64,000 bases of DNA, from sequence record PP496444.1, one strand, 5' to 3'. The first letter of the stretch is position 1. Every line of letters starts with the position of its first letter. The position numbers and the translations under genes were made by a program. Below the pieces are notes generated by a model. That model was not told the origin of the DNA and searched no databases. It was given only the letters and a program-made list of their open reading frames with translations. Below, piece by piece: positions 25,150 through 64,000 of this stretch.

Positions 25150-26250
25150 CTAGAGGTTGCGGACATTAATGAGATTGCCACTGGATGCGGCGACTAACAT
25201 GGTCTTGGTCAGGCCGCGCTTGCTAAAGCACAAATCGTCTTCGGCCAGCGGGCATGTGAAATAATCATTCTTCATGATCTCGTCGTGATCCGCCTTGCAA
25301 TGGCAGGGACGCAACTTTTCGATCTTGTCGAATGTGGTCAACAATGCTGATTTACTGCGAACTTTCAACAAGTCCCTCCAGAGCTCCCATCCCAGCTCAT
25401 ATTCTGCCATGAGTTTACGCAGCTGGCGCTTCTCTTTATCTGGCAGGATATCGCCCACAATAACGCGGCGGTGGAAGTTGTCTCGGGTGATGTAGATCAG
25501 CATCCATCCTTCAATGGTGATGTTGTGCATCATCTCAAGCAGCACGATGTACGACTTGATCTGCGGCACGTTGGCTTTGGCCGGGAACACGCCACCTTCT
25601 TTCTGATGCTTCATAACCTTGTAGCTGGACGTGGTCTTGTAGTCGATCACGTAGTACTTGCCGTCGAGCCAGAGCAGCCCGTCGGTGTGGCCGGTGATGT
25701 TCTTGCCGTACGTAACGGCCAGCTCTTCATAGCGGAAGAACTTGTGTCCACACTTGACGCACTTGCCGGGATGGGGCGAGAATTCGTGGTTGTGTTTACA
25801 CTTCTTGCAGTAGTAGTCACCAACGATGGCCCGCTTGAGGCCTTTCATAAAGCGCTGGCGACTCAGCTTCTTCTTCGTGGCTTGGTCAAGGATCTTGGCG
25901 TTGCGGCGTGCCGAATCTCCCATGGCGAATGGGGTCAGGCTGACGGCGTGCTGGAACGTCTCGTGCACCGCCGTACCAATGGACGTATAAAAGCCGCCGC
26001 CGACTACCTCTTCCTCGCGTTCCATGACCAGACCGCTTTCCAGCGTGGCAATGGCGTGATAGATCGGGCAGAACGGAAAGGAGCTGGGGTGCAGGTCCAT
26101 CACCCGTGTTTCAGACATATGGCGAACGTCCGTGACTTTGCACGCCTCCGCCATGATGCGTTCCATCTCCTTGAGCGCGTCAGCCATCGGTCCTGATGCA
26201 ACCTGATGCTTACTCACTAACCCGATGTTTGCTTTTCCGAAACCTTTCAT
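25150..26250 (-). CDS. Cas4-like PD-(D/E)XK exonuclease with inserted zinc ribbon
   Basis: HPSSFPFCP, GTAVHE, TGHTDG, IDYKT, QIKSY; C-terminal PCHC..CPL; internal CKKC..CVKC. Confidence 0.85.
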   Translation of the reverse strand: MKGFGKANIGLVSKHQVASGPMADALKEMERIMAEACKVTDVRHMSETRVMDLHPSSFPFCPIYHAIATLESGLVMEREEEVVGGGFYTSIGTAVHETFQHAVSLTPFAMGDSARRNAKILDQATKKKLSRQRFMKGLKRAIVGDYYCKKCKHNHEFSPHPGKCVKCGHKFFRYEELAVTYGKNITGHTDGLLWLDGKYYVIDYKTTSSYKVMKHQKEGGVFPAKANVPQIKSYIVLLEMMHNITIEGWMLIYITRDNFHRRVIVGDILPDKEKRQLRKLMAEYELGWELWRDLLKVRSKSALLTTFDKIEKLRPCHCKADHDEIMKNDYFTCPLAEDDLCFSKRGLTKTMLVAASSGNLINVRNL

Positions 26251-39602: not shown

Positions 39603-40610
39603 TCAGGCGAGGAATCTGTGTAAGCCCGAGGAATATTTGTTCTGGTACATGGTCATCACCTTATTGGACGCGGTGGTGGCTCTATTACCAGATCGGTTAA
39701 ACGACATATGCAGCCAAGGGCGGTTCCCGTGCTCAAAGATGAACTGGTCATAGTTGATGTTGTCTTTGACCCAATTGGCACGATCCCAATACTCTTGATT
39801 GCTAATGCCGGGCCACTGTACATCGATGGCTTGCCCCGTCTCATGTTGGGACCTACCATTCTGCTGTGTACGAAAACCGGAGTTGAAGGAGAAACCTGGG
39901 TAGGCGTCCCACAATGGTTCCAGTATATGCTCGGCCAATGCCTTGAGGTTGCACACGATCTCCTGTTCCGTCAAGCCCCGTTGAGCCTTGATGGTGTGAG
40001 GGAACGCAGTCTTGATCGACACGTTAGCCAGCGTAAACCTTGCGGATAAACGCATGCCGTAGTCCAGCGGTAGAGTAATCATGGCGCAGTCAGTGATCGG
40101 CGTAACTCGGTCTGGCGGGGCTACCGTGTTCTCTTCCTGCGCGGGTGTATCGATTGGCGGTGGAGGTGAAGTCTGGGGCGCCGGTGGGTAGCTCATCTGC
40201 GGAGTACCGGGACTGGTCTCGTATTCATCCGCGAAGGCATCGTAACCGACATTCCGAATAAGCTTGGCTGCGTTCTCGGGGCTGGTCTGATCCACCGGAA
40301 TGATGGTGGCGGCAACAATCTCCACCTTACCCTTATCCGATGTACCGTCACCTACCAGCACCGTGGGCGAACCGGTCATGGGCGCGTCATTGTCTTGGAA
40401 CCCATCACCCATGCGGGCGACCGGAAGACCGTTGGTGAACACCGTGGCGCTACCCACTCTCTGCGACGTGGGACCGGGTGGACCAATCCAGGTGTCAGTG
40501 ACTCGTACTACAGGGAAGCCATTGACCATGTGGTTAGGTGATCCAGACACTGCCACCCGTTTAGCGTTTGACAAGTCTGGGCCTTGCCGGGCCACTGGTT
40601 TCAATGCCAT
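39603..40610 (-). CDS. PAAR-repeat spike-tip protein fused to a peptidase M15 domain
   Basis: PVARQG, GSPN.MVNGFPVVRVTD, GSATVFTNGLPVARMGD, GSPTVLVG; C-terminal NSGFR..SQH..G.AID and WLHMS. Confidence 0.8.
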   Translation of the reverse strand: MALKPVARQGPDLSNAKRVAVSGSPNHMVNGFPVVRVTDTWIGPPGPTSQRVGSATVFTNGLPVARMGDGFQDNDAPMTGSPTVLVGDGTSDKGKVEIVAATIIPVDQTSPENAAKLIRNVGYDAFADEYETSPGTPQMSYPPAPQTSPPPPIDTPAQEENTVAPPDRVTPITDCAMITLPLDYGMRLSARFTLANVSIKTAFPHTIKAQRGLTEQEIVCNLKALAEHILEPLWDAYPGFSFNSGFRTQQNGRSQHETGQAIDVQWPGISNQEYWDRANWVKDNINYDQFIFEHGNRPWLHMSFNRSGNRATTASNKVMTMYQNKYSSGLHRFLA

Positions 40611-40619
40611 GTGCCCACC

Positions 40620-41258
40620 TTACGGGTTGTCCTGAATTTGTCCAGCCTTACGTGTCTCGATACCGATGGTGTTGGTATCCTTGGCACCTTCCACGTTCTC
40701 AGCCAGATTGCCTTTGACCAGTACCGCGCTGTCGCCCACCACTTGCCGTGAGAAGTTCCTGCCGACAACCTCGATCAAGTCCCGCTTGGCAGTTCTGATG
40801 ATGTCGCCGTCGTTGGTGAACTTCTCTGTACTGCCGGTATGGTGAATGAACGTCACCTCGCCGCTGGTAAGGTCTGTGATCCACTGGTTACCCGACGCAT
40901 CGATCTGGCCGTACGTGGTGGGGTAGTTGGTACCCGACACGTCCGTCTGTTGCGTGCCCGCCGACTTCCAGAACCCGGTGTATATCGGGAAGTGTGGGTC
41001 TTGGCTGGGGAACTCGATGATCAGCTCAGAGCCAACGATGGGAACACCGAAGGAACTGGTACCACCTCCGCCACCCTGATCAGCAGGAACCTGAGCGTAG
41101 CACCACGGCAGTGAGTCCACGTCTCCGTCGATGAACGGCGGAATGCGGCACTTCACCCGTGAGATGCCACGCGGGTCTTGGTTGCTGACCACGATGCCTT
41201 TGAGCGGCTGATCGAAGAACCGCCGGGGCTTCATCACTTGATTGATAGAAAAGAGCAT
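40620..41258 (-). CDS. baseplate central spike (gp5/gpV-like OB fold + beta helix)
   Basis: GIVVSNQDP...RVKCRIP..PWC..G...P.VGS...F...DP.FP.Y.G; short beta-repeat C-terminus. Confidence 0.85.
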   Translation of the reverse strand: MLFSINQVMKPRRFFDQPLKGIVVSNQDPRGISRVKCRIPPFIDGDVDSLPWCYAQVPADQGGGGGTSSFGVPIVGSELIIEFPSQDPHFPIYTGFWKSAGTQQTDVSGTNYPTTYGQIDASGNQWITDLTSGEVTFIHHTGSTEKFTNDGDIIRTAKRDLIEVVGRNFSRQVVGDSAVLVKGNLAENVEGAKDTNTIGIETRKAGQIQDNP

Positions 41259-51076: not shown

Positions 51077-54000
51077 TTACGCCACCTCACGCAGCTTCCA
51101 CTTGGTTTCGGCCTTGACGGCTTTCGCCAGTGCCCGACCGGCAGCAGCCTCGCTTACTTTGCCGAGGTCTGTATTGCCGTCCTGCGTTTCGAGCACGTAG
51201 CCATCCTTGGTCTTGACCAGTGCGATGAAGCGTGTGCCGGACTTGGTCTGGAAGCGACGTATCGTCTTGCCGGTTACTTCGGTGTTCACCTTGGCAGCGG
51301 GTGTACGCTTCTTCGTGCGCAGCGTCAGCGACTTGATCGTGTCCATGACCTCGTCGTAGTTGCCCACACTCACACCTGAACGCACGATGGCGTCCAGCTC
51401 TGCCTTGGCTTCCGCCTTGGAGTTCGACAGGATGAACCATTCGCTGTCCGAAGATTCCCACTTGACCGTAGGGACTATAACCTTGCGACGCACCTGAACA
51501 GCCGATGGTTGCTTGGTCATGTCTACCAAGATCCAGCATTCGCCTTCGTAGAACATCACGTATGGACGCAGTTCACCTTTCGGCACCGCGCGCTTGCGGT
51601 CCAGGTGGAAGTTGCGAACGTCGGTGTCGAGTGCAGCCTCGAAGTTCAGGAGTTTGCGCTTGCCTTGTGTGAACGCGGCCAGTGCGGATTCCAGATCCTT
51701 CAAATAGCGCGGCTGAATCTCGAAGTTCTCTTTCAGCTTGTCGATGACGTTGGACAACGCCCGGTAGGTAGGCACGATTGCGTAGATGAACTTCCCGGTT
51801 TCGCGGAAGCCCAACTGAGTCGCCATCTTATCCGTGACATCCGGGTCTTCGCGATCCAATGCCAGCTGGATCATGTTGTTCAACACACCTGGGTACACGA
51901 AGATCTCACCGTCAAGATCACGGTTACGTTCCACCACGGCTTTCTTGACCGGGGCATCCGGGATTGGAGCGGGCTCGTCTTCCGGTTCCTCGGCGTCATC
52001 ATCTGCTTCCGGTTCCTCTACCACTGGATCGGATTCAGGCGTCGTGTACTGCGTGGCGCGTTCCGGCATGCCCACCATCTCGGCCAGTCGCTGGCGTACG
52101 GGCACCTTGTTCGGCTTGAGGATCACGAACACCGCCAGCTTGTTCACTGAGACAGTGCCGATTTCCTTGATCTTCACCTTGAGGGTGTTTTTACCGGAGC
52201 TGACTACCTCACCATCCCCGTATTCGGTGTGCACCTGCAAACCTTTCATGTCGGCTTCATCAGCCGTCAAGTCATTGTCTGCCAGCCAGTCGGCCACCGG
52301 AATGATACCCAGTGCGTCTGTGAACGGCAGCTGCATGTTCGAGGTGTACGGCACCGTGATCAGCGCGGAGCCCGGCAGGTTACCCGCTGTCGGAATCTCC
52401 TTGGCTTTCGTTGGGCCGTCGTACGTCTTGAGGAAGTCGGCGTACTCATCCCGGCGGATCTTGGTGTACTGCCCGTAAGCATCTACATAGCTGAACAACG
52501 AACCCTGATCGTCTTCCGAACCGAACTTGTTGGCGTCCATGATCGAATCAAGAGTCATGCTGACCAGCGGCAGGTTAGGCAGCTTGTCGTAACGGGCGTC
52601 CGATGCCTGGAAGCGAACCATCGTCAAGAGCTTAGACATCATCCGTGCGGTCTTGGTCACGTCGATAGTGCCGTCGGCAATGATGCGGTCGAAGAAGATC
52701 TTGCTGCGTGCGCCGTACTTGTTCTTCGGGTCGGGGCGGTTGAGTCGCGACTGCCCTTGCTCGAATTCCCCCGGCGACCATACCGAGTCCGTCGAGATCA
52801 AGCGGTTGACGAACTGGAAGTTATGACCTGTGTTCAGGGACGTCTCTACCCCGATCAAGCCGATGATGCTTTCATCCTTCTCGAACTTCGGCAGCAGCTT
52901 GTCCTTGTCTGCGGCGTAGTACAGGATGACCTTCTTCTGGAGTTCCGGTGGAAGCGACGCGTGCAATGCCTGAGCCGATGCCACATACGCGCAGAAGATC
53001 AGCACTTTGCCGTTCGTCTTGTCGCGGCTGTGCTCGTCGAACAACCGGATGATCTCTTTGGCTTTCGGGCTGATACGATCGGTGCCCTGCAATACCTTGT
53101 CACCCACCTTGTCGTGCGCGGGTGCCGAGATGAACATTTCCAGTCGCTGCAAGTACGGACGCAGCAGCATCTCGATGTTGGCGACGTTTTCCTCGCCTTC
53201 ATCCGACGCTTTCAGTTTCTTCATCAGATCCGCGTCGGCCATGATGGCTTCAACGGCATCGTTCAGAATGTCCTGATACACGGCCATCTGTTTCTTCGAC
53301 AGCGACACCTTGTGGAACGTTTCGGTGGCCGCTGGCAACAATGCTGCCCACTCACGCCGTGAGACGCGCACGTAGTCCGCTGCACTGTTCATCTGGTTAC
53401 GCACGTCACGCTCGGCGTTGTTCTTCCAGCTGAGCGGCTTGCCTTGGAACGTCTCGGCAGCGTACCGCTCGATGAAGTCCTTCTTGGAACCGAACGTCGA
53501 TGGCGACATGATCGAGAACTGACCAGCCGCATCCGTCAGTTGCCCGTGCACGTAGGTACCTGTGGTCTGGCGGAGGTTGTCCGACAGGGTGGCCTGTGCC
53601 CGTACCGAGGAAGATCGTGCACTGTCCAAGTTGGCCAGATACTGCGATTCGTCCATGGACAAGTAGATCCACTCGAAGCGACGCATCAGCTCTGAGTTGT
53701 TCGACAGGATCAGATCGGTGTTGCCGTACTGAATGCTGTACTGCCCGTTCTTGGGGAAGTCGAAGTCACACAGAACCAACGTGTTGACCGGCGCGTTGTA
53801 GATCAAGTTGTACATGTAGTCGTGACCGTAACGGTTGATCACGTCTGTGGACAGCACGACCACGTTGACCGAACCTTGCGTCAAGTAGGTGATATCCTCG
53901 ATGTAGTTCTTGATCAGGTTCTTCGGGCACATCATCAGCGGACGCTTCTGCTGATTGCCTTTCAGATCGCCACGCTCGTAATACTGACCGAGAGTGAACA

Positions 54001-56830
54001 GGCAGTCCAGCACGTTCATCAGCGTCTTACCGCCGCCCGCATCCACGTGGTCAACCTTCTTGTCCGGCTGGCGCTGACCCGACACAATGGGACGTATCTG
54101 GTGAGCCAGTGCGGAGAAGTCTGGGCGAATGAATGGCACCGGGGCCACTTCCGTCTCGTCGTTGACCTTGACCGGGTTCAGCGAGTACTTCGCCTGCTTG
54201 GCCGACACTTGAGCCTTCAGTTCATCCTTGGCCGACTGCTCTGCATACTTCGACATGGCGAAGATGGACGCCACACCCTGCATACGACTGGTGACCGACA
54301 GCACGTTGCTGGTGCCGATGGCCTTCGGATCACTGAGGACCTTGAACAACGAGTCCGCACCGTCTTGCATGGCTTCGACCGCGATACGGCCAATGCCTCG
54401 GAGCATGGGGATGTCGGAATCTGCGGTCAAGTGACTGATACGCAAGTCCTTGAAGATTTCCTCGAACGGGTAGTCGTCTGTCGCGATGTCACGATCAACC
54501 AGACGCTTCGCCAGTGACGTAACCGATTGCAGCACCTCGTGGATCGAAGGGTTATTTCCGTCGGGGAACAGGAACTCTTGAACGCTTTCACCCAGCACGT
54601 CGGTGACTGCCGCAGGAACCTCGAAGTCGCTTTCCTCGAAGTAGTCGGTAACCTTCTTGCCTTTGTAGTTCACCCACGCCGTCAGCGAGTTACGCAGATA
54701 GCCGAACGACAGTGCCTTGGGGTTTACTTTTTCCTCCAGCGACTTCTGGTACTCCATGACGCTGGCCGGGGAATAAGCCGAGACGTCAGCAGTAACCAAC
54801 CCACCTGATGCTGTGGTGTAGCTGAGGATGTCTGCGCCCCAGTCAGTGAAGACGTAGTAGGAACGGAGACGGCCTTGAGCGAACGACTTGATAACCAGAT
54901 TGTCCGTCTTGGCGTTGTCCGGGACCATGTACTGGTTCTGGATGCTGATCTCAGGAGTTTCCTGACCCTCAACCTCTTTGAACTTCGCTTTCACGCCGCC
55001 CATGCCCACGTCTTGGCGGGTGTACTCGTTGTCCGCGAAGGCGCCGCGATACGAATCCTCGATGGCCTTCTCGTACTGCGCAACAATCTGCGCGTCAGCA
55101 GTCGGTACGAATACCAGATCAGCGTCAGGGCCGATCATCATCTGGTCGCCGTTCAAGCGCGAACGCTGCGGCAGCTCACGGGTGTCCGAGATTGCCTTGC
55201 CCACGGCGCGATAGAACGATGCGTCCGTCTTGGCGAACGAGTACTGCGCGTCCGTCATCTGGTACGCCCACTCGGCCACGTCAACCGGGGCGGGTGGAGA
55301 GTGCTGAGTCACGAATGCCGCTACGTCTTCCGAGATGGTGAACTCGGAGAAAGCAACCACTTCGGCTTCACCACCTTGGCCGATGTCAGCCAGTCGGCAC
55401 ATGAACGAGCGGGACTTCAGACGCGCCATGGCATCCTTGTAATCCGCTTTGTCCACCACGTCGGTCTGCAGGGACGGTGGCACCGGCATCTTGTTGGTTG
55501 ACAACCAGCCATTGAGGCGGGTCATCGGTGTGTTTTCCAGAAGCCAGTTCATGAAGTCCACTGGGCGATCTGGCATGGTTGGTTCTTCAGGCGCACCCGC
55601 CGTCAGATTGCCATCCAGTCCACGGTACGCATGGTTCCAGTTCTTGAGCAGGCGCTCCAGAATCTTGCCGCCCACTTCATCCTTCACACGCTGGAAGGAT
55701 GGCTTGTCCTCTTTCGAGTAGGCGAAGATGATCTTGGCGACCATGCTGTCGTTGACATCGGACCAGGTGTTGTCGTAGTCCAGATCCTCGATGCGATACT
55801 TGCGCAGCACGTCCAGCTCTTGCTGGTTGGCAAAGCTGCAATACATCGCGGTCTCGCCAAGGGTACGGCGAACGTACGGCAGCTTGCCGCCTGTGCCGGT
55901 GCCATTGATGAAGCTGACCTCGTTGGTGCTTTGTATCCCAGAGTTGTTGCGGGGTGGCGACACTTCGATCAGCAGGTTGAGCCCGGCGACCACTTCCTTC
56001 AACCCGTCCTTCTCGAAGGCGAAGTCATTCTCGCCCAGCAGAACTTCCTTGTCGATGAACGGGCTGTTCAAAGCAGACTTGAAGTTGACCGGGATACGCA
56101 AGCGCATCTGGCGAGTCATGTCGTCCAGCGCCAATGGATCTTCCATGAACTTGCCCAGTGCAGTCTTGAGCAGTTCCAGTTGGCTGGTCATCAGTGCATC
56201 GACCTTGGTTTGCATCCGGGTACGTTCTTCCGGCGGCAGATACACCATGGCGCTTTGCAGCATTCTCAGGCGGGGCACGACATAGGACGTGTCGACCTTG
56301 CTGGCTTCGCAAATGCCCATCGCGTCGAACATCTCAGGGATCGAGAAGCCGGGAATGCGGGACTCTGTGACGAAGTTGCCCATGGCCGGGATAGCCAGCG
56401 TGAAGTCACCTCGACCGTTCGCCGTCACCTTGGTATAGGGTGCCAGTGTACGCATGCCTTCCGACATCTCGTCCCACTTCTCAGACTTGATCGTGGCACG
56501 GTTGGCGCGGAACTTGACCGGTGGGGTCTGGCCGTAGTCCATGAACTCCAGGCTTTCTTTCATGTCCTGCAACAGACGCTTGCCGTTGTCGAACAACTTC
56601 GGCAGCTCGGTCTCGAACAGGTTAGGCACCTTGGTCAGTTCGTCCATCAGCGTAGCGCCACCTACGGACAGCACAGCGTATGCCATGGTGTGCAGGTCGC
56701 CCAGCTTGTAGTCGTAGTTGATCTCGTAATCTTCCGGTTCTTCAACCGGCTCGGCCAAGGGTGCGGCCAGCGAACGTAAGCGTTCCATCTCTTCCGGGTC
56801 GCGACGACGCCTGCTTGCTCTTTTGCTCAT
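51077..56830 (-). CDS. giant (~1917 aa) protein with SNF2-family helicase/ATPase domain
   Basis: Motif I VDAGGGKT, Ia MCPKNL, II MDESQ, III TTGT, IV KVLIFC, V LNTGHNFQ, VI EQGQSRLNRP; ATG 56830 behind AAGGTG. Confidence 0.85.
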   Translation of the reverse strand: MSKRASRRRRDPEEMERLRSLAAPLAEPVEEPEDYEINYDYKLGDLHTMAYAVLSVGGATLMDELTKVPNLFETELPKLFDNGKRLLQDMKESLEFMDYGQTPPVKFRANRATIKSEKWDEMSEGMRTLAPYTKVTANGRGDFTLAIPAMGNFVTESRIPGFSIPEMFDAMGICEASKVDTSYVVPRLRMLQSAMVYLPPEERTRMQTKVDALMTSQLELLKTALGKFMEDPLALDDMTRQMRLRIPVNFKSALNSPFIDKEVLLGENDFAFEKDGLKEVVAGLNLLIEVSPPRNNSGIQSTNEVSFINGTGTGGKLPYVRRTLGETAMYCSFANQQELDVLRKYRIEDLDYDNTWSDVNDSMVAKIIFAYSKEDKPSFQRVKDEVGGKILERLLKNWNHAYRGLDGNLTAGAPEEPTMPDRPVDFMNWLLENTPMTRLNGWLSTNKMPVPPSLQTDVVDKADYKDAMARLKSRSFMCRLADIGQGGEAEVVAFSEFTISEDVAAFVTQHSPPAPVDVAEWAYQMTDAQYSFAKTDASFYRAVGKAISDTRELPQRSRLNGDQMMIGPDADLVFVPTADAQIVAQYEKAIEDSYRGAFADNEYTRQDVGMGGVKAKFKEVEGQETPEISIQNQYMVPDNAKTDNLVIKSFAQGRLRSYYVFTDWGADILSYTTASGGLVTADVSAYSPASVMEYQKSLEEKVNPKALSFGYLRNSLTAWVNYKGKKVTDYFEESDFEVPAAVTDVLGESVQEFLFPDGNNPSIHEVLQSVTSLAKRLVDRDIATDDYPFEEIFKDLRISHLTADSDIPMLRGIGRIAVEAMQDGADSLFKVLSDPKAIGTSNVLSVTSRMQGVASIFAMSKYAEQSAKDELKAQVSAKQAKYSLNPVKVNDETEVAPVPFIRPDFSALAHQIRPIVSGQRQPDKKVDHVDAGGGKTLMNVLDCLFTLGQYYERGDLKGNQQKRPLMMCPKNLIKNYIEDITYLTQGSVNVVVLSTDVINRYGHDYMYNLIYNAPVNTLVLCDFDFPKNGQYSIQYGNTDLILSNNSELMRRFEWIYLSMDESQYLANLDSARSSSVRAQATLSDNLRQTTGTYVHGQLTDAAGQFSIMSPSTFGSKKDFIERYAAETFQGKPLSWKNNAERDVRNQMNSAADYVRVSRREWAALLPAATETFHKVSLSKKQMAVYQDILNDAVEAIMADADLMKKLKASDEGEENVANIEMLLRPYLQRLEMFISAPAHDKVGDKVLQGTDRISPKAKEIIRLFDEHSRDKTNGKVLIFCAYVASAQALHASLPPELQKKVILYYAADKDKLLPKFEKDESIIGLIGVETSLNTGHNFQFVNRLISTDSVWSPGEFEQGQSRLNRPDPKNKYGARSKIFFDRIIADGTIDVTKTARMMSKLLTMVRFQASDARYDKLPNLPLVSMTLDSIMDANKFGSEDDQGSLFSYVDAYGQYTKIRRDEYADFLKTYDGPTKAKEIPTAGNLPGSALITVPYTSNMQLPFTDALGIIPVADWLADNDLTADEADMKGLQVHTEYGDGEVVSSGKNTLKVKIKEIGTVSVNKLAVFVILKPNKVPVRQRLAEMVGMPERATQYTTPESDPVVEEPEADDDAEEPEDEPAPIPDAPVKKAVVERNRDLDGEIFVYPGVLNNMIQLALDREDPDVTDKMATQLGFRETGKFIYAIVPTYRALSNVIDKLKENFEIQPRYLKDLESALAAFTQGKRKLLNFEAALDTDVRNFHLDRKRAVPKGELRPYVMFYEGECWILVDMTKQPSAVQVRRKVIVPTVKWESSDSEWFILSNSKAEAKAELDAIVRSGVSVGNYDEVMDTIKSLTLRTKKRTPAAKVNTEVTGKTIRRFQTKSGTRFIALVKTKDGYVLETQDGNTDLGKVSEAAAGRALAKAVKAETKWKLREVA

Positions 56831-56840
56831 GAGGTGCACC

Positions 56841-57778: not shown

Positions 57779-58528
57779 TTACTCCAGAAACGATTTCAAG
57801 TCAACGTTGATCTTTCCGTACATTTCCTCGGTCCTCTTGCCCATGTCGCGGAAACATTGCAGCACGGCGTCTTCAACCTTGGCCCAACGCTTGTCCTTAA
57901 TGTGGGGCGCCAGCGCGGTCTTCAGCATGTTGGCCTGACTCACGTACATGTGCGCGAAGCCAATGAAGATCGGGTACATCACCTTCTCGCTGATGTTGGC
58001 CGCGAGATTGCTTTGCTCCTGATTCGCCTGCATGTCGTTGATCAGTTCTCGAATCGAGTTGATCATCGCGTTCAGGGAGTAGACAGCGGACTGTGAACCT
58101 TCCGTGTTCCGCACTCGCAGTTCGAGAATGGGCACCATGTCGATCAAGGTGATCAACATGCGTACCTGGAACATGGAAAAACCCCGATCTTTTTCCTCAG
58201 CGGACGAGATCAGGGACATGATTTTGCTTGAATCAGTGCCGAAGATCGACTCCAGCATATCCGGGTCAACCTCCAGATCACCACCTTCCGACATGGTGGT
58301 TTTCATCTTCACCAAGTAGTCCCGCAACTCATCCGGGTTCTTGTCGGATACGATGTCAACCCCGGTGTACCCACAAGAGTCACACACAGGATCATCGTTG
58401 AGTATCTCGGAGGACAACTCATCTGGTGCACGGCATTTGTTGCACCGGCACTTGAACGTGTCTTTGGTCAAAGTCTTCACGACACGGAACGCGCCGTAAG
58501 TGGCCTTCACCTTAATGGGATCAGCCAT
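57779..58528 (-). CDS. hypothetical protein, N-terminal zinc ribbon and helical C-terminus
   Basis: CRCNKC..CDSCG. Confidence 0.75.
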   Translation of the reverse strand: MADPIKVKATYGAFRVVKTLTKDTFKCRCNKCRAPDELSSEILNDDPVCDSCGYTGVDIVSDKNPDELRDYLVKMKTTMSEGGDLEVDPDMLESIFGTDSSKIMSLISSAEEKDRGFSMFQVRMLITLIDMVPILELRVRNTEGSQSAVYSLNAMINSIRELINDMQANQEQSNLAANISEKVMYPIFIGFAHMYVSQANMLKTALAPHIKDKRWAKVEDAVLQCFRDMGKRTEEMYGKINVDLKSFLE

Positions 58529-58928
58529 GGTTGAGCACCTCTAATACATTCACGGTAGACAGGAAGTGTCGGGTCGGCGGATTGGTCTGGAATAGGCGGA
58601 GCATGTTCGGCTGAATCCACAGGAACCTGTCATGTTCATCGTTCAAGGTAATGGGCGGCACACTGGTCAGGTTGATCAGGACGTACACTCGGTCGGGGTC
58701 CAGCTTATCCGCCTTGATGCGCTTCCATGGTTCACTCTTGATCGTATGCCAGCCCAGTTCCTCTGCCAGTTCCCTACGCAATGCTTCCGCAGCCTTCTCC
58801 CCGGCGTCCAACCTACCACCGGGAAGATTCCACATTCCTGCGTTGTTCACCTTAGCGCTGCGGCGTGCCAGTAGCACATCGCCTGTTGCGGTGTTTCTGA
58901 TAATGGCGTACACGCCGCGCTTGTCCAT
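58521..58928 (-). CDS. Nudix hydrolase
   Basis: Complete Nudix box GGRLDAGEKAAEALRRELAEELG. Confidence 0.92.
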   Translation of the reverse strand: MDKRGVYAIIRNTATGDVLLARRSAKVNNAGMWNLPGGRLDAGEKAAEALRRELAEELGWHTIKSEPWKRIKADKLDPDRVYVLINLTSVPPITLNDEHDRFLWIQPNMLRLFQTNPPTRHFLSTVNVLEVLNHG

Positions 58929-60691: not shown

Positions 60692-60724
60692 CAAAAATGG
60701 GGGATGAACGTGTCATCCCCCATT
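60692..60724 (-). terminator. intrinsic terminator
   Basis: AATGGGGGATGA / TCATCCCCCATT hairpin plus T run on the - strand. Confidence 0.8.
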
Positions 60725-60748: not shown

Positions 60749-61021
60749 TTAACGGTCGCCCAGTTTGATCTTGACTGGAGCACCAACCTTGCTACGTTTG
60801 CGAGTGACACGCAGGTCACCCTTGGCTTTCCGCGAACGGCGAAGCTTGGCCCGTTTCAGGATCTCGGACTTGTTCTTGCGGTAGTACTGCTTGCTCGCCA
60901 GCTTGCGGGCAGCTTTGTTCTTGCGCGCTTCCATCAGAGCCTTTTTGCGCTCGGCGGCAGTACGGGGTTTGGTACGACGGGTCAGGCCATTGCCTTTCAG
61001 CTTCAACCGTTTCATAGCCAT
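60749..61021 (-). CDS. small highly basic (Lys/Arg-rich) protein, possibly DNA-condensing
   Basis: 90 aa dominated by K/R with very few acidic residues; followed by its own terminator. Confidence 0.75.
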   Translation of the reverse strand: MAMKRLKLKGNGLTRRTKPRTAAERKKALMEARKNKAARKLASKQYYRKNKSEILKRAKLRRSRKAKGDLRVTRKRSKVGAPVKIKLGDR

Positions 61022-61037
61022 GGTGGTATATCTCCAG

Positions 61038-63017
61038 TCAATTGATTCCGTACTTTTCGATGAAAGCGGAATAAGGGGTTTTATCGCCTCCGAAGGAATT
61101 GACCTTCGAGTTACTTGCCCCGTCTTTGTAGATCAGGGTCGTGGTAAGATTCGCGCTGAATGGCCCGATGACGCCGCCGTTCTTCACGATGAACTCGTTT
61201 ACCTTGCTGTCCCGTACGCCGGTCAAGTAGAAGCGCTGACCTTTGAACAACTGGGACGCCACCCGAACCTTCTTCGGGGGTTTCGGCAGCACGTACGTCA
61301 ACCCAGCCTTGGTGTACGCCATAAAGGCGGTCATGAAGGCCGGAAGTGCTGCAATGAACTGATCCGCACGCTTAGGTCCGAATCCATCCAACTCTGCCAG
61401 CTTTTCCCGCAATGCCTCACGGGCAGCTCTGGTCCGCTGCAAGCCCGCAGGATCGCCCAGGCTCAACGCTGCCGGTTTCAGCAGTGTGAGTCCCATGCCG
61501 TGGCCGAACGCCCCGCTGGCAACCATTAGGTCGGCCAGGTCAGCGTCCACGATACAGTCGGCCAGCGCCGCAACGAACTTCTTGGCCGTCGGGGCGCCGA
61601 AACCGGCTTGCTCGACCAGTTCTTTGGCGAACCGGATCGGAGTTTTGGTCACTTTACGAATTAGGCCCTGTACGCCGCCAACGTCCATGTACTCTAGCAT
61701 AGCGTCAAACGTGGCTTCCTTGAACCCTTCCAGACCGAGCGTCACGAAGAAGAACGTCATGGACTTCGTGAGCTGTTGCTCTCCGCTGCCGATGGTGCGG
61801 ATGTTGACGCTGTTCTCATCCCAGTCGTACGAACCGGCTTTGGGCAGATCGGCTTTGCGTGCCGGAGTGACCACACCTGTGATATAGGGGATCACGTCAC
61901 CAGACCGGACTAGGGTAATGACAGCACCCTTCCCGATCTTGTTGTCCTTGATGAACTTGGCATTGTGCCCTGTGGCCCACGTCACCTTGACGCCAGCCAG
62001 TCGTACCGGTGTGATCTTGACGCGGGGCTTGAGTGTCCCGTATCTTGATTCGTTCCACTGGACCAGCTCGACCGTTGCCGTTGCCACCTCTGACATCAGT
62101 GCGGACTTGAAGGCGAACTGATAGTCCGGGTTACCTGCGCTCGACGGAATACGACCCACCTTGGTCGTGGACACGATCACGCCGTCCATCTCGTATATCG
62201 ACTTCTTGCGCCGGTCCAGCAGATACGTGGTCAGCTCATTGATGTCCAGCCGCAGCACCTTCTTGACCGTGGGGATCAGGAAGCCCATGGCCTTGAGTTT
62301 GGCGAACTGCTTGTCCACGTCCATGGCAGGCTTGACGATCTGGTACATGACCACTTTGATCTTCTTGCCTTTGAATACTGGCGGAATGATCTTGCTGTTC
62401 GCGGCACCGGCCACCAGATTGCGTGGGTTGGCAAAGTCATCCTTGAACTGCTCGAAGGTGGCCACCGGCATGATCAGCTCGCCCCTGCCTTGCCAGCCAT
62501 TGGGAATCGGTGGCAGGTCCAGATAAGGCGCCACGTGGCTGATGTCCAAGCCTTGGTTACCATCGCCACGGGTGTACAGCCCCGGCTTCTTGGGATTGGC
62601 TGTCCCTTTGATGCCGATGGAGATACCGTCCAACTTGTCCGACAGCACATAAGGGCCTGGGTTAGCCACGGCCCAGCGCTGGATGGACTTCTCATCCAGA
62701 TACTTGTTCATGCTGCCCATACCGAACGGGAGCGATGTCTTGTTCAGCTCGTTGGACTGCGAACCCACCTGATACAGCTTCTTGTCCACGGTGAGGATTA
62801 CGGTCTCGTACTTGTTGAACTCCTCATCCGTCACGACAGGCACACCGGCGTAGTAGGCGTCTTTCAACAATCCGTAGGCTTCAGCCAGTTGCTTCTTGGG
62901 TACGGACTTCGCCGCTTCCACCTGCATGGCTTTATTAGCCGTGTGGATAATACCGAACACGAAGTCTTTCAGTTCTTGGCGACCTTTTTTGGTGCCTATG
63001 GTGAACTTGGTCGCCAT
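61038..63017 (-). CDS. ligA: NAD+-dependent DNA ligase
   Basis: YYAG..VTDEEF (Ia), SDKLDGIS (KxDG), RGDG..G.DI, RGEL, NPRN..AG, DGVIV, HN, SGDVIP, C-terminal BRCT-like FYLTG. Confidence 0.92.
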   Translation of the reverse strand: MATKFTIGTKKGRQELKDFVFGIIHTANKAMQVEAAKSVPKKQLAEAYGLLKDAYYAGVPVVTDEEFNKYETVILTVDKKLYQVGSQSNELNKTSLPFGMGSMNKYLDEKSIQRWAVANPGPYVLSDKLDGISIGIKGTANPKKPGLYTRGDGNQGLDISHVAPYLDLPPIPNGWQGRGELIMPVATFEQFKDDFANPRNLVAGAANSKIIPPVFKGKKIKVVMYQIVKPAMDVDKQFAKLKAMGFLIPTVKKVLRLDINELTTYLLDRRKKSIYEMDGVIVSTTKVGRIPSSAGNPDYQFAFKSALMSEVATATVELVQWNESRYGTLKPRVKITPVRLAGVKVTWATGHNAKFIKDNKIGKGAVITLVRSGDVIPYITGVVTPARKADLPKAGSYDWDENSVNIRTIGSGEQQLTKSMTFFFVTLGLEGFKEATFDAMLEYMDVGGVQGLIRKVTKTPIRFAKELVEQAGFGAPTAKKFVAALADCIVDADLADLMVASGAFGHGMGLTLLKPAALSLGDPAGLQRTRAAREALREKLAELDGFGPKRADQFIAALPAFMTAFMAYTKAGLTYVLPKPPKKVRVASQLFKGQRFYLTGVRDSKVNEFIVKNGGVIGPFSANLTTTLIYKDGASNSKVNSFGGDKTPYSAFIEKYGIN

Positions 63018-63028
63018 CTGGATCGTCC

Positions 63029-63622
63029 TTATATGGGAATGGTGTCTATGTCAGCGAATCGCTGCATGCACCACTTGACGTAGGGTTTAACCTGCTCTGG
63101 CCATCGCTTCGTATACCCACGGGCGTACAACTCTACCATGCCGGGCACAGCTTCATAGTAGTTGCCGAAGGGATAAACGTCGAAGTTCTTGAGTTTCAAG
63201 CCGAGCAGCTGCATCAGTAATTTACCGTTCTGGATAGTCGTGGCATACGCCGGATTATCGTAGGTAAACCCCTTACGCCATTCGTTGAACTTCGGGTCTT
63301 GCGGGTTCTGGCCGAGCAGGGATAGCAGCAGGTCACCACTACGCAGTTGTTGCAGTGTCGTTCCCTCTTTCTCCAGCAGCGCGTGCGTGCACTCATGCAG
63401 CAGAGTGGCCCATGCTTTCGGCTCGGTGAAGAAGGAGTCCCGGAGTAGGCAGGTGCCGCCGGTGAATGAAGCGGTAGGTTGGCCTTTGCCCGGAATCAAC
63501 GTGAAGGTGTGAGTCCGTGCATAGCCATAGACGGGCGCCCGCATGTTCTGCGGCATCTTGTCGATGATCTTCAGTAACGCCGAGTTGTCAACCTCATTCC
63601 CGCTTCGATCCACCGTCGTCAC
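63029..63622 (-). CDS. hypothetical protein with HExxH motif
   Basis: LLHECTHAL; GTG start overlaps the upstream stop. Confidence 0.65.
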   Translation of the reverse strand: MTTVDRSGNEVDNSALLKIIDKMPQNMRAPVYGYARTHTFTLIPGKGQPTASFTGGTCLLRDSFFTEPKAWATLLHECTHALLEKEGTTLQQLRSGDLLLSLLGQNPQDPKFNEWRKGFTYDNPAYATTIQNGKLLMQLLGLKLKNFDVYPFGNYYEAVPGMVELYARGYTKRWPEQVKPYVKWCMQRFADIDTIPI

Positions 63623-64000
63623 TTTGGGACTTCGGCAATCTCCATCAGGTGTGCCACTTCCGCGAACTTCTCCGCAGTAGCGAGAGCCGACATGCGTTCC
63701 CGGTACAGCTGAATCTCGATAGGTTCCTCCAGCTCTTTCAGGAACTTTTCCAGCTTGGTTTTGAACCGCTCGGTATACGGCTTCTGGATGGTGATGTGTG
63801 CCTTGTAGTCCGGGAACGTCGGCGCTGCACCAATGCCCAGCAGCTGGTTGTGCAGGTCAGTCAGTTCCTTGCAGTTGACCAGCAGCACCAGAGTGTCTTC
63901 TTTGGGACCGAACACATCGACGCCAGTAACCTCAGCGGTGTACTTGTGCGAAGGGTTGAGCACACCTCGTGCGGCCGCATCGTCAATGGTGGCCGAAGAG
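63619..64000 (-). CDS. 2H phosphoesterase, Acb1 (T4 gp57B)-like; 5' end lies beyond the window
   Basis: DTLVLLVNCKELTDLHNQLLGIGAAPTFPDYKAHITI; frame is open to the window edge (SSATIDDAAARG..). Confidence 0.7.
   Translation of the reverse strand, partial: SSATIDDAAARGVLNPSHKYTAEVTGVDVFGPKEDTLVLLVNCKELTDLHNQLLGIGAAPTFPDYKAHITIQKPYTERFKTKLEKFLKELEEPIEIQLYRERMSALATAEKFAEVAHLMEIAEVPK

Follow-up and report, generated by a model that had tools for sequence, protein, structure and literature searches.

Two phage enzymes with solved structures, Acb1 of Erwinia phage FBB1 (7T26/7T27), which has an orthologue in T4 (gp57B/Acb1), and the 2H phosphodiesterase PDE-9 of Burkholderia phage BCSR5 (9Q2G/9Q2Y), are the closest described counterparts of the gene that is the subject of this study. 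This gene, Peetri_00143, lies at the end of a 64,000-nt stretch of DNA (hereafter the window), which corresponds to bases 62001-126000 of the Pseudomonas phage vB_PpuM-Peetri record PP496444.1 (100% identity over the last 2 kb). Peetri is a 200-kb jumbo phage with Pseudomonas putida PaW85/KT2440 as isolation host, and Peetri_00143 is labelled "RNA ligase" in GenBank. Peetri_00143 instead belongs to the Acb1 family of 2H phosphodiesterases, and we consider it probable that its small product (188 aa) acts without metal and opens the cyclic di- or trinucleotide signals used by CBASS (antiphage signalling based on cyclic oligonucleotides) and systems of this type.

For T4 and FBB1 Acb1, an acid-base mechanism and the roles of individual residues have been described (PMC9117128). 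An HxT/HxT tetrad is responsible for catalysis, Y12, W74 and F107 stack on the bases together with W147 of a lid formed by residues 145-152, and the sole base-specific contact is made by E141 to the N6 of adenine (PMC9117128). The numbering used in that study fits the T4 protein (152 aa) and is offset by 7-8 positions from the FBB1 chain; the correspondence between T4 and Peetri residues given below is a putative one, derived from these offsets and via profile positions. PDE-9 cleaves 3'3'-cyclic GMP-AMP (3'3'-cGAMP) and spares 2'3'-cyclic di-AMP (2'3'-c-di-AMP), and it closes its pocket with an N-terminal lid (bioRxiv 10.1101/2025.08.21.671373). Both enzymes belong to a structural group with broad activity on the messengers produced by cGAS/DncV-like nucleotidyltransferases (CD-NTases). 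It has also been reported that what viral 2H enzymes cleave is determined by their core and not by the lid, and that the Panoptes system can be set off by enzymes of broad activity, T4 Acb1 among them (bioRxiv 10.1101/2025.08.21.671373).

Family membership, catalytic residues and predicted fold

On the minus strand, window positions 63619-63999 contain an open frame of 126 codons with a stop codon at 63619-63621, which runs past the end of the window. The gene is complete in the record (125619-126185, 188 codons), where it extends 185 nt past the window to record base 126185. Its ATG is preceded by a Shine-Dalgarno-like GAGGGG and overlaps the end of the upstream open reading frame (ORF) by 14 nt, and its stop codon shares 4 nt with the GTG start of the next ORF, the HExxH ORF (GTGA overlap). 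A first-pass annotation, made from the window alone, had described the product as an Acb1-like 2H phosphodiesterase and a candidate anti-CBASS enzyme. Both peptide stretches quoted in it are present in the minus-strand translation of this frame, although the strand had not been named, and the first HxT motif, which was predicted to lie beyond the window, is indeed found there: at 9-17 nt past its end, the gene encodes H57-C58-T59.

The full-length Peetri_00143 protein matches the Pfam family Acb1 (PF23474) with 58.3 bits (E 9.2e-16, cut-off 27) over profile positions 2-137 of 144, and the fragment encoded within the window passes the same cut-off by itself (36.5 bits, E 4.9e-9). LigT-type families remain below their cut-offs, with 24.3 versus 27 bits for 2_5_RNA_ligase2 (PF13563), 16.7 versus 23.3 bits for LigT_PEase (PF02834) and 24.4 versus 65.7 bits for TIGR02258, and the Pfam and NCBIfam matches of the protein include no ligase family that would indicate a nucleotidyl-transferase ligase domain. 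The name "RNA ligase" in GenBank evidently originates from, and is based solely on, PHROG 755, a cluster of the same name that matches the protein at 1.2e-23. In both databases the label reflects an older superfamily name and no demonstrated ligase, and the identification as an Acb1-family member corrects it. As the orthologue cluster of Peetri_00143 already carries PF23474 in precomputed tables, a current annotation pipeline would find this assignment. In a word-index protein search, this cluster was the sole result.

A tblastn search of 50,697 phage records identified full-length orthologues in 8 other P. putida phages of the genus cluster G3 (92-93% identical among the matches listed), and all nine G3 phages carry a full-length match to the phosphodiesterase. 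Beyond this cluster, the same search returned 100 records at less than 60% identity. Genes annotated as 57B, the T4 gene that has been named Acb1 (PMC9117128), were reached in Acinetobacter phage 133 and in Vibrio phage KVP40, where the match (E 5e-6) covers residues 7-133 and includes both motifs; the matches listed contain these 57B-annotated genes from T4-like phages but not T4 itself. With the 93%-identical orthologue P0001 as query, HMMER was run exhaustively against 1.84 billion representative proteins and gave 249 proteins at E <= 0.001 and only five at E <= 1e-10, and the nearest relative outside the genus is 36% identical. Due to this distance and the small number of strong matches, we regard the Peetri-type lineage as fairly isolated.

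An alignment of 114 single-domain relatives, all of which match Pfam Acb1, formed the basis of the column counts given below and of a profile. In a search against solved structures, this profile matched FBB1 Acb1 over its whole length (7t26, 4e-33), the BCSR5 enzyme (9q2g, 1e-25) and, in its C-terminal part, the portal protein of Pam3 (8hds, 5e-18), whereas LigT-type enzymes were found only at 0.016-0.8. The profile was needed to obtain a strong match, as the pairwise search of the PDB with the single sequence is weak and finds 7t26 at E 2e-4. The short motifs that had been cited in the first-pass annotation as common with Acb1 are visible in the alignment to the FBB1 chain 7t26. The Acb1 likeness of Peetri_00143 is far beyond chance.

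The residues of the HxT/HxT tetrad are conserved. H57, T59 and H130 (T4 H44, T46 and H113) are invariant across the 114 relatives, and the position of T132 (T4 T115) is occupied by threonine in 101 and by serine in 12 of them, giving T or S in 113 of 114. Aromatic residues are also present at the three core base-stacking positions, as in FBB1 and T4 Acb1: the column of Y19 (T4 Y12) is aromatic in 113 of the 114 relatives, and the columns of T4 W74 and F107 hold F92 and F124 in Peetri (Table 1). The adenine-contacting position differs. FBB1 Acb1 and most relatives have a glutamate in this column, whereas the Peetri protein has S166, which is kept in all five G3 phages examined, and the five nearest of the relatives that have no glutamate there carry Q, Q, G, A and M. 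As 42% of the family members are without glutamate at this position, the residue in the E141 column is one that determines specificity and not family membership. The replacement by serine calls for caution as to which signals are cleaved, and the substrate list of T4 Acb1 may not transfer to the Peetri enzyme.

Table 1. Features of the Peetri window, in window coordinates
Feature	Position	Strand	Basis and remarks
Acb1-family 2H phosphodiesterase gene Peetri_00143, 3' two-thirds (codons 63-188 and stop)	63619..64000	-	Frame, full gene in the record, Pfam Acb1, structure matches
Codon of F92, T4 W74 base-stacking column	63910..63912	-	Aromatic in 102/114 relatives; mapping inferred via FBB1 chain
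Codon of F124, T4 F107 base-stacking column	63814..63816	-	Aromatic in 112/114 relatives; pairwise alignment to 7t26
Second catalytic HxT motif, H130-I131-T132	63790..63798	-	Direct reading of the sequence
Codon of S166, T4 E141 column (adenine N6 contact)	63688..63690	-	E in 66/114 relatives, S in 9/114
Lineage-specific C-terminal tail, residues 169-188, with one Phe (F174), at the place of the Acb1 lid	63622..63681	-	Pfam match ends at 137/144
HExxH ORF, 197 codons, GTG start	63029..63622	-	ORF list; start overlaps phosphodiesterase stop by 4 nt
Terminator-like hairpin, 12-pair stem and T run	60696..60724	-	Consensus scan; such sites in the region not above chance
MutT-type Nudix hydrolase with Nudix box	58521-58928	-	Pfam NUDIX 64.7 bits, PHROG 1198

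The fold was assessed with an AlphaFold2 model of the orthologue P0001, which was built on the relatives' alignment. The model has a mean predicted local distance difference test (pLDDT) score of 87.6 and a predicted template modelling (TM) score (pTM) of 0.81, displays the alternating strand/helix pattern of the 2H fold, and is of low confidence only in residues 1-20 and 168-188. In a Foldseek search against the PDB, the top five matches were to 9q2y, 7t26, 9q2g and 7t27 (E 3.7e-10 to 1.5e-8, target TM 0.69-0.77), and LigT, Usb1, plant CPDase and AKAP18 followed at 2e-5 or weaker with a TM of about 0.5. Among viral models, the best named matches were all "Anti-CBASS protein Acb1", one of them from the Pseudomonas jumbo phage PaBG. 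As modelled, the P0001 protein thus resembles the two solved phage Acb1-type enzymes above any other solved structure.

In the fold comparison, PDE-9 ranks first (E 3.7e-10, target TM 0.74). The N-terminal stretch that precedes its first strand is similarly long, and the major head protein of its source phage is 37.5% identical to the one of the Peetri-type phages; on the other hand, PDE-9 and the Peetri-type protein are only 16-18% identical, and the N-terminal lid is a feature of PDE-9. FBB1 Acb1, the best sequence match among solved structures and the second-best fold match, is about 24% identical in the structural alignment with the orthologue model; like the Peetri protein, it is a small phage protein with a single domain of compact 2H fold. 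LigT/ThpR enzymes (e.g. E. coli LigT, 5LDI) have the 2H superfamily fold and two HxT motifs in common with the Peetri protein but differ in that their family scores are under the curated cut-offs and their fold matches reach an E of about 5e-5 and a TM of about 0.5, at 10-13% identity. Family score, profile and fold matches all favour Acb1, as had been proposed from the window, and by none of these three comparisons was a LigT-type enzyme the closer match.

A further difference from FBB1 and T4 Acb1 concerns the C-terminus. The Peetri protein exceeds them in length by about 36-44 residues, their short C-terminal lid with its Trp cannot be recognised in it, and a 20-residue, probably helical tail is found instead. 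This tail compares with a median of 3 residues in the 114 relatives, and a 168-aa Vibrio phage homologue is without it. In the P0001 model, a helix is predicted at residues 172-180 with a pLDDT of about 57-60. Since both termini are modelled at low confidence, the pocket may be closed by either of them or by neither.

Each of the five G3 phages examined has an intact phosphodiesterase gene of the same length, with all key residues kept. Pairwise ratios of nonsynonymous to synonymous substitution rates (dN/dS) are 0.07-0.10, with one near-identical pair having too few changes to judge, and the gene is under purifying selection. As a separate observation, the synonymous divergence (dS) of the gene between Peetri and its relatives is 0.58-0.70, two to three times the 0.21-0.33 of the flanking genes, and the lowest nucleotide identity of Peetri to these relatives is located at about 63900-64100. 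The raised dS may reflect an exchange of the gene among related phages.

Proposed role and alternative explanations

Whereas family membership, catalytic residues and fold were read from the gene and its relatives, catalysis, substrate and biological effect are inferred from the characterised members, that is T4 and FBB1 Acb1 and PDE-9 of BCSR5. By analogy with these enzymes, the Peetri protein would bind cyclic di- or trinucleotide alarm signals, which are produced during infection by the CD-NTase of a CBASS-type immune system of the host. The two histidines would catalyse the attack of the ribose 2'-OH on the 3'-5' phosphodiester by metal-independent acid-base catalysis, and the ring would be opened via a 2',3'-cyclic phosphate intermediate to yield a linear product with a 3'-phosphate. 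As a consequence, the effector would never be activated, the infected cell would be spared premature killing and the CBASS-type defence would be disarmed. With the glutamate changed to serine and the lid replaced by the 20-residue tail, the set of signals cleaved by the Peetri enzyme likely differs from that of T4 Acb1, and its exact composition cannot be read from the sequence. The term "candidate anti-CBASS enzyme" used in the first-pass annotation seems to us the fitting level of claim.

Several points weigh against this role. Where T4 Acb1 has its adenine-contacting glutamate (E141), Peetri has a serine, and Q, G, A or M are found in the nearest relatives. The Pfam match does not extend to the C-terminal lid with its Trp, the place of which is taken by a tail of low model confidence, and the structural evidence comes from the model of a 93%-identical orthologue and not from one of the Peetri protein itself. 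Furthermore, the substrates of viral 2H enzymes vary widely, and there are structural groups for which cleavage was seen with none of the 18 messengers tested (bioRxiv 10.1101/2025.08.21.671373). The literature searched holds no activity or infection data for the Peetri_00143 protein or close relatives. In the papers on the isolation host, the defences described are encoded by prophages, among them a RexAB-type system that acts against this phage genus, and CBASS is not reported; nor does the literature searched say anything about CBASS in P. putida KT2440. As CBASS is unmentioned for the laboratory host, it is natural hosts that would hold the relevant target, and the presence of an Acb1-type gene in the G3 phages suggests that these hosts use cyclic-oligonucleotide immunity.

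Some of these points bear on a rather unlikely alternative, according to which Peetri_00143 is a true Acb1-family 2H phosphodiesterase with a natural substrate other than a CBASS signal, such as a different cyclic or linear oligonucleotide messenger (e.g. the cyclic oligoadenylates of type III CRISPR systems or 2'-5'-linked species) or a housekeeping cyclic dinucleotide, and serves another form of counter-defence or host manipulation. Such a substrate would be in line with the serine in place of the adenine-reading glutamate, with the absence of this glutamate from the nearest relatives, with the lineage-specific tail and with the published screen, in which the scope varied between and within structural groups and the groups inactive on all 18 messengers numbered two. 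However, both best solved structural matches are in the group that cleaves 3'3'-cGAMP and other CD-NTase products, and the three base-stacking aromatic positions are kept. We regard it as very unlikely that the protein is a LigT/ThpR-type RNA 2',3'-cyclic phosphodiesterase or "2'-5' RNA ligase" that heals RNA ends, for instance those of tRNAs cut by host anticodon nucleases. The common 2H superfamily fold, the weak sub-threshold matches to 2_5_RNA_ligase2, LigT_PEase and TIGR02258, the name of PHROG 755 and a gene annotated as polynucleotide kinase elsewhere in the genome could be taken to support it, but Acb1 scores at twice its cut-off while all LigT-type scores are under theirs, the profile search of solved structures leaves LigT-type enzymes far behind Acb1, and in the fold search LigT and Usb1 lag by four to five orders of magnitude. 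Moreover, the genome annotation lists no nucleotidyl-transferase RNA ligase, and neither the "polynucleotide kinase" (record 175454-176065) nor a 159-aa "DNA ligase" (record 40598-41077) has Pfam support.

A third possibility, which we find highly improbable, is that the phosphodiesterase is part of a three-gene module with the translationally coupled HExxH protein and an NAD-dependent DNA ligase, and that this module is used for nucleic-acid end processing or repair and not for signal degradation. Vibrio phage vB_VcorM_GR11A has these three genes (window 61038-64000, minus strand) in the same order, with protein identities of 36%, 34% and 37%, respectively, and the 4-nt start/stop overlap joins the first two. 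However, GR11A and GR7B are the nearest genome-wide relatives of the G3 phages, with a major head protein that is 54% identical, and we therefore read the common gene order as common descent and not as joint function. In addition, the Acb1-type gene is placed quite differently in more distant phages, where it adjoins the tail-fibre chaperone gene (T4-like phages) or lies inside portal or other virion proteins. One might also speculate that the Peetri-type protein and its nearest relatives constitute an Acb1 subclade without the adenine-reading glutamate, to which the 20-residue tail was added in the P. putida phages. The substrate range of this subclade may have shifted, for example towards signals without adenine or towards the sparing of decoys such as the Panoptes-triggering 2'3'-c-di-AMP, and the enzyme may be paired with the lineage-restricted HExxH protein as a two-part counter-defence unit; taken as a whole, we think that this scenario is unlikely.

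As a candidate anti-CBASS enzyme, Peetri_00143 is a new member, from a somewhat isolated lineage, of the known Acb1 anti-defence family and does not represent a new kind of system. It is the first recognisable counter-defence gene for the recently described P. putida jumbo phages of genus cluster G3 (CEPEST collection). With the change at a specificity position and its unusual tail, it also provides a reasonable case for studying how the choice of signals degraded by Acb1-type enzymes is tuned.

Genomic surroundings

The phosphodiesterase gene sits in a long run of minus-strand genes, with virion genes (head-tail connector) upstream. Downstream, the order is HExxH ORF, NAD-dependent DNA ligase, small basic protein, terminator-like hairpin, four ORFs without assigned function, Nudix hydrolase, HNH endonuclease and a 1920-aa helicase. 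The flanking ORFs, the HExxH ORF included, have no Pfam or PHROG match. Apart from the nine G3 phages, the HExxH ORF occurs only in two phages of Vibrio coralliilyticus, the near relatives GR11A and GR7B, and a further homologue search with it returned only itself. It is strongly conserved, with about 99% identity at the amino-acid level and a dN/dS of 0.02-0.03, and a single-sequence model of the protein reached a pLDDT of 48 and is unusable. In GenBank, the HExxH ORF starts 22 codons later (63556), but similarity to the GR11A homologue begins at residue 4.

The hairpin follows a small lysine/arginine-rich ORF at 60749-61021 and probably closes the minus-strand run that holds the phosphodiesterase, the HExxH ORF, the NAD-dependent DNA ligase and the small basic protein. 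A scan of the region for promoters and terminators gave sites at a frequency not above chance. The Nudix hydrolase at 58521 had been pointed out in the first-pass annotation as another nucleotide-degrading enzyme near the phosphodiesterase. Its identity holds, as it is an ordinary MutT-type enzyme, but its relevance does not, since it is six genes away and nothing links the two; we therefore rejected a functional link between them.

More distant relatives of the G3 phages by head protein include phiRSL1, BcepSauron and BCSR5, the source of PDE-9. In other phages (PDB 8hds; phage records MN734436.1, MK552141.1 and MT939487.1), Acb1-like 2H domains within virion proteins are found at the C-terminus of the Pam3 portal protein, in the portal protein of Aminobacter phage Erebus, in the "prohead protease" of BcepSauron and in "structural proteins" of Erwinia jumbo phages, an arrangement suggesting that in some phages the enzyme is carried within the particle.

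Further observations concern other genes of Peetri. The product of window positions 25150-26250 (minus strand) is annotated as "CRISPR/Cas system associated protein", which seems over-specific, as only a PD-(D/E)XK nuclease domain was matched (36.7 bits). The 1920-aa ORF annotated as DNA helicase occupies window positions 51077-56839 (minus strand). Outside the window, at about 158-196 kb of PP496444.1, two QueC-like genes, a QueE-like gene and a GTP cyclohydrolase gene are present, which speaks for a 7-deazaguanine pathway that probably serves to modify DNA.

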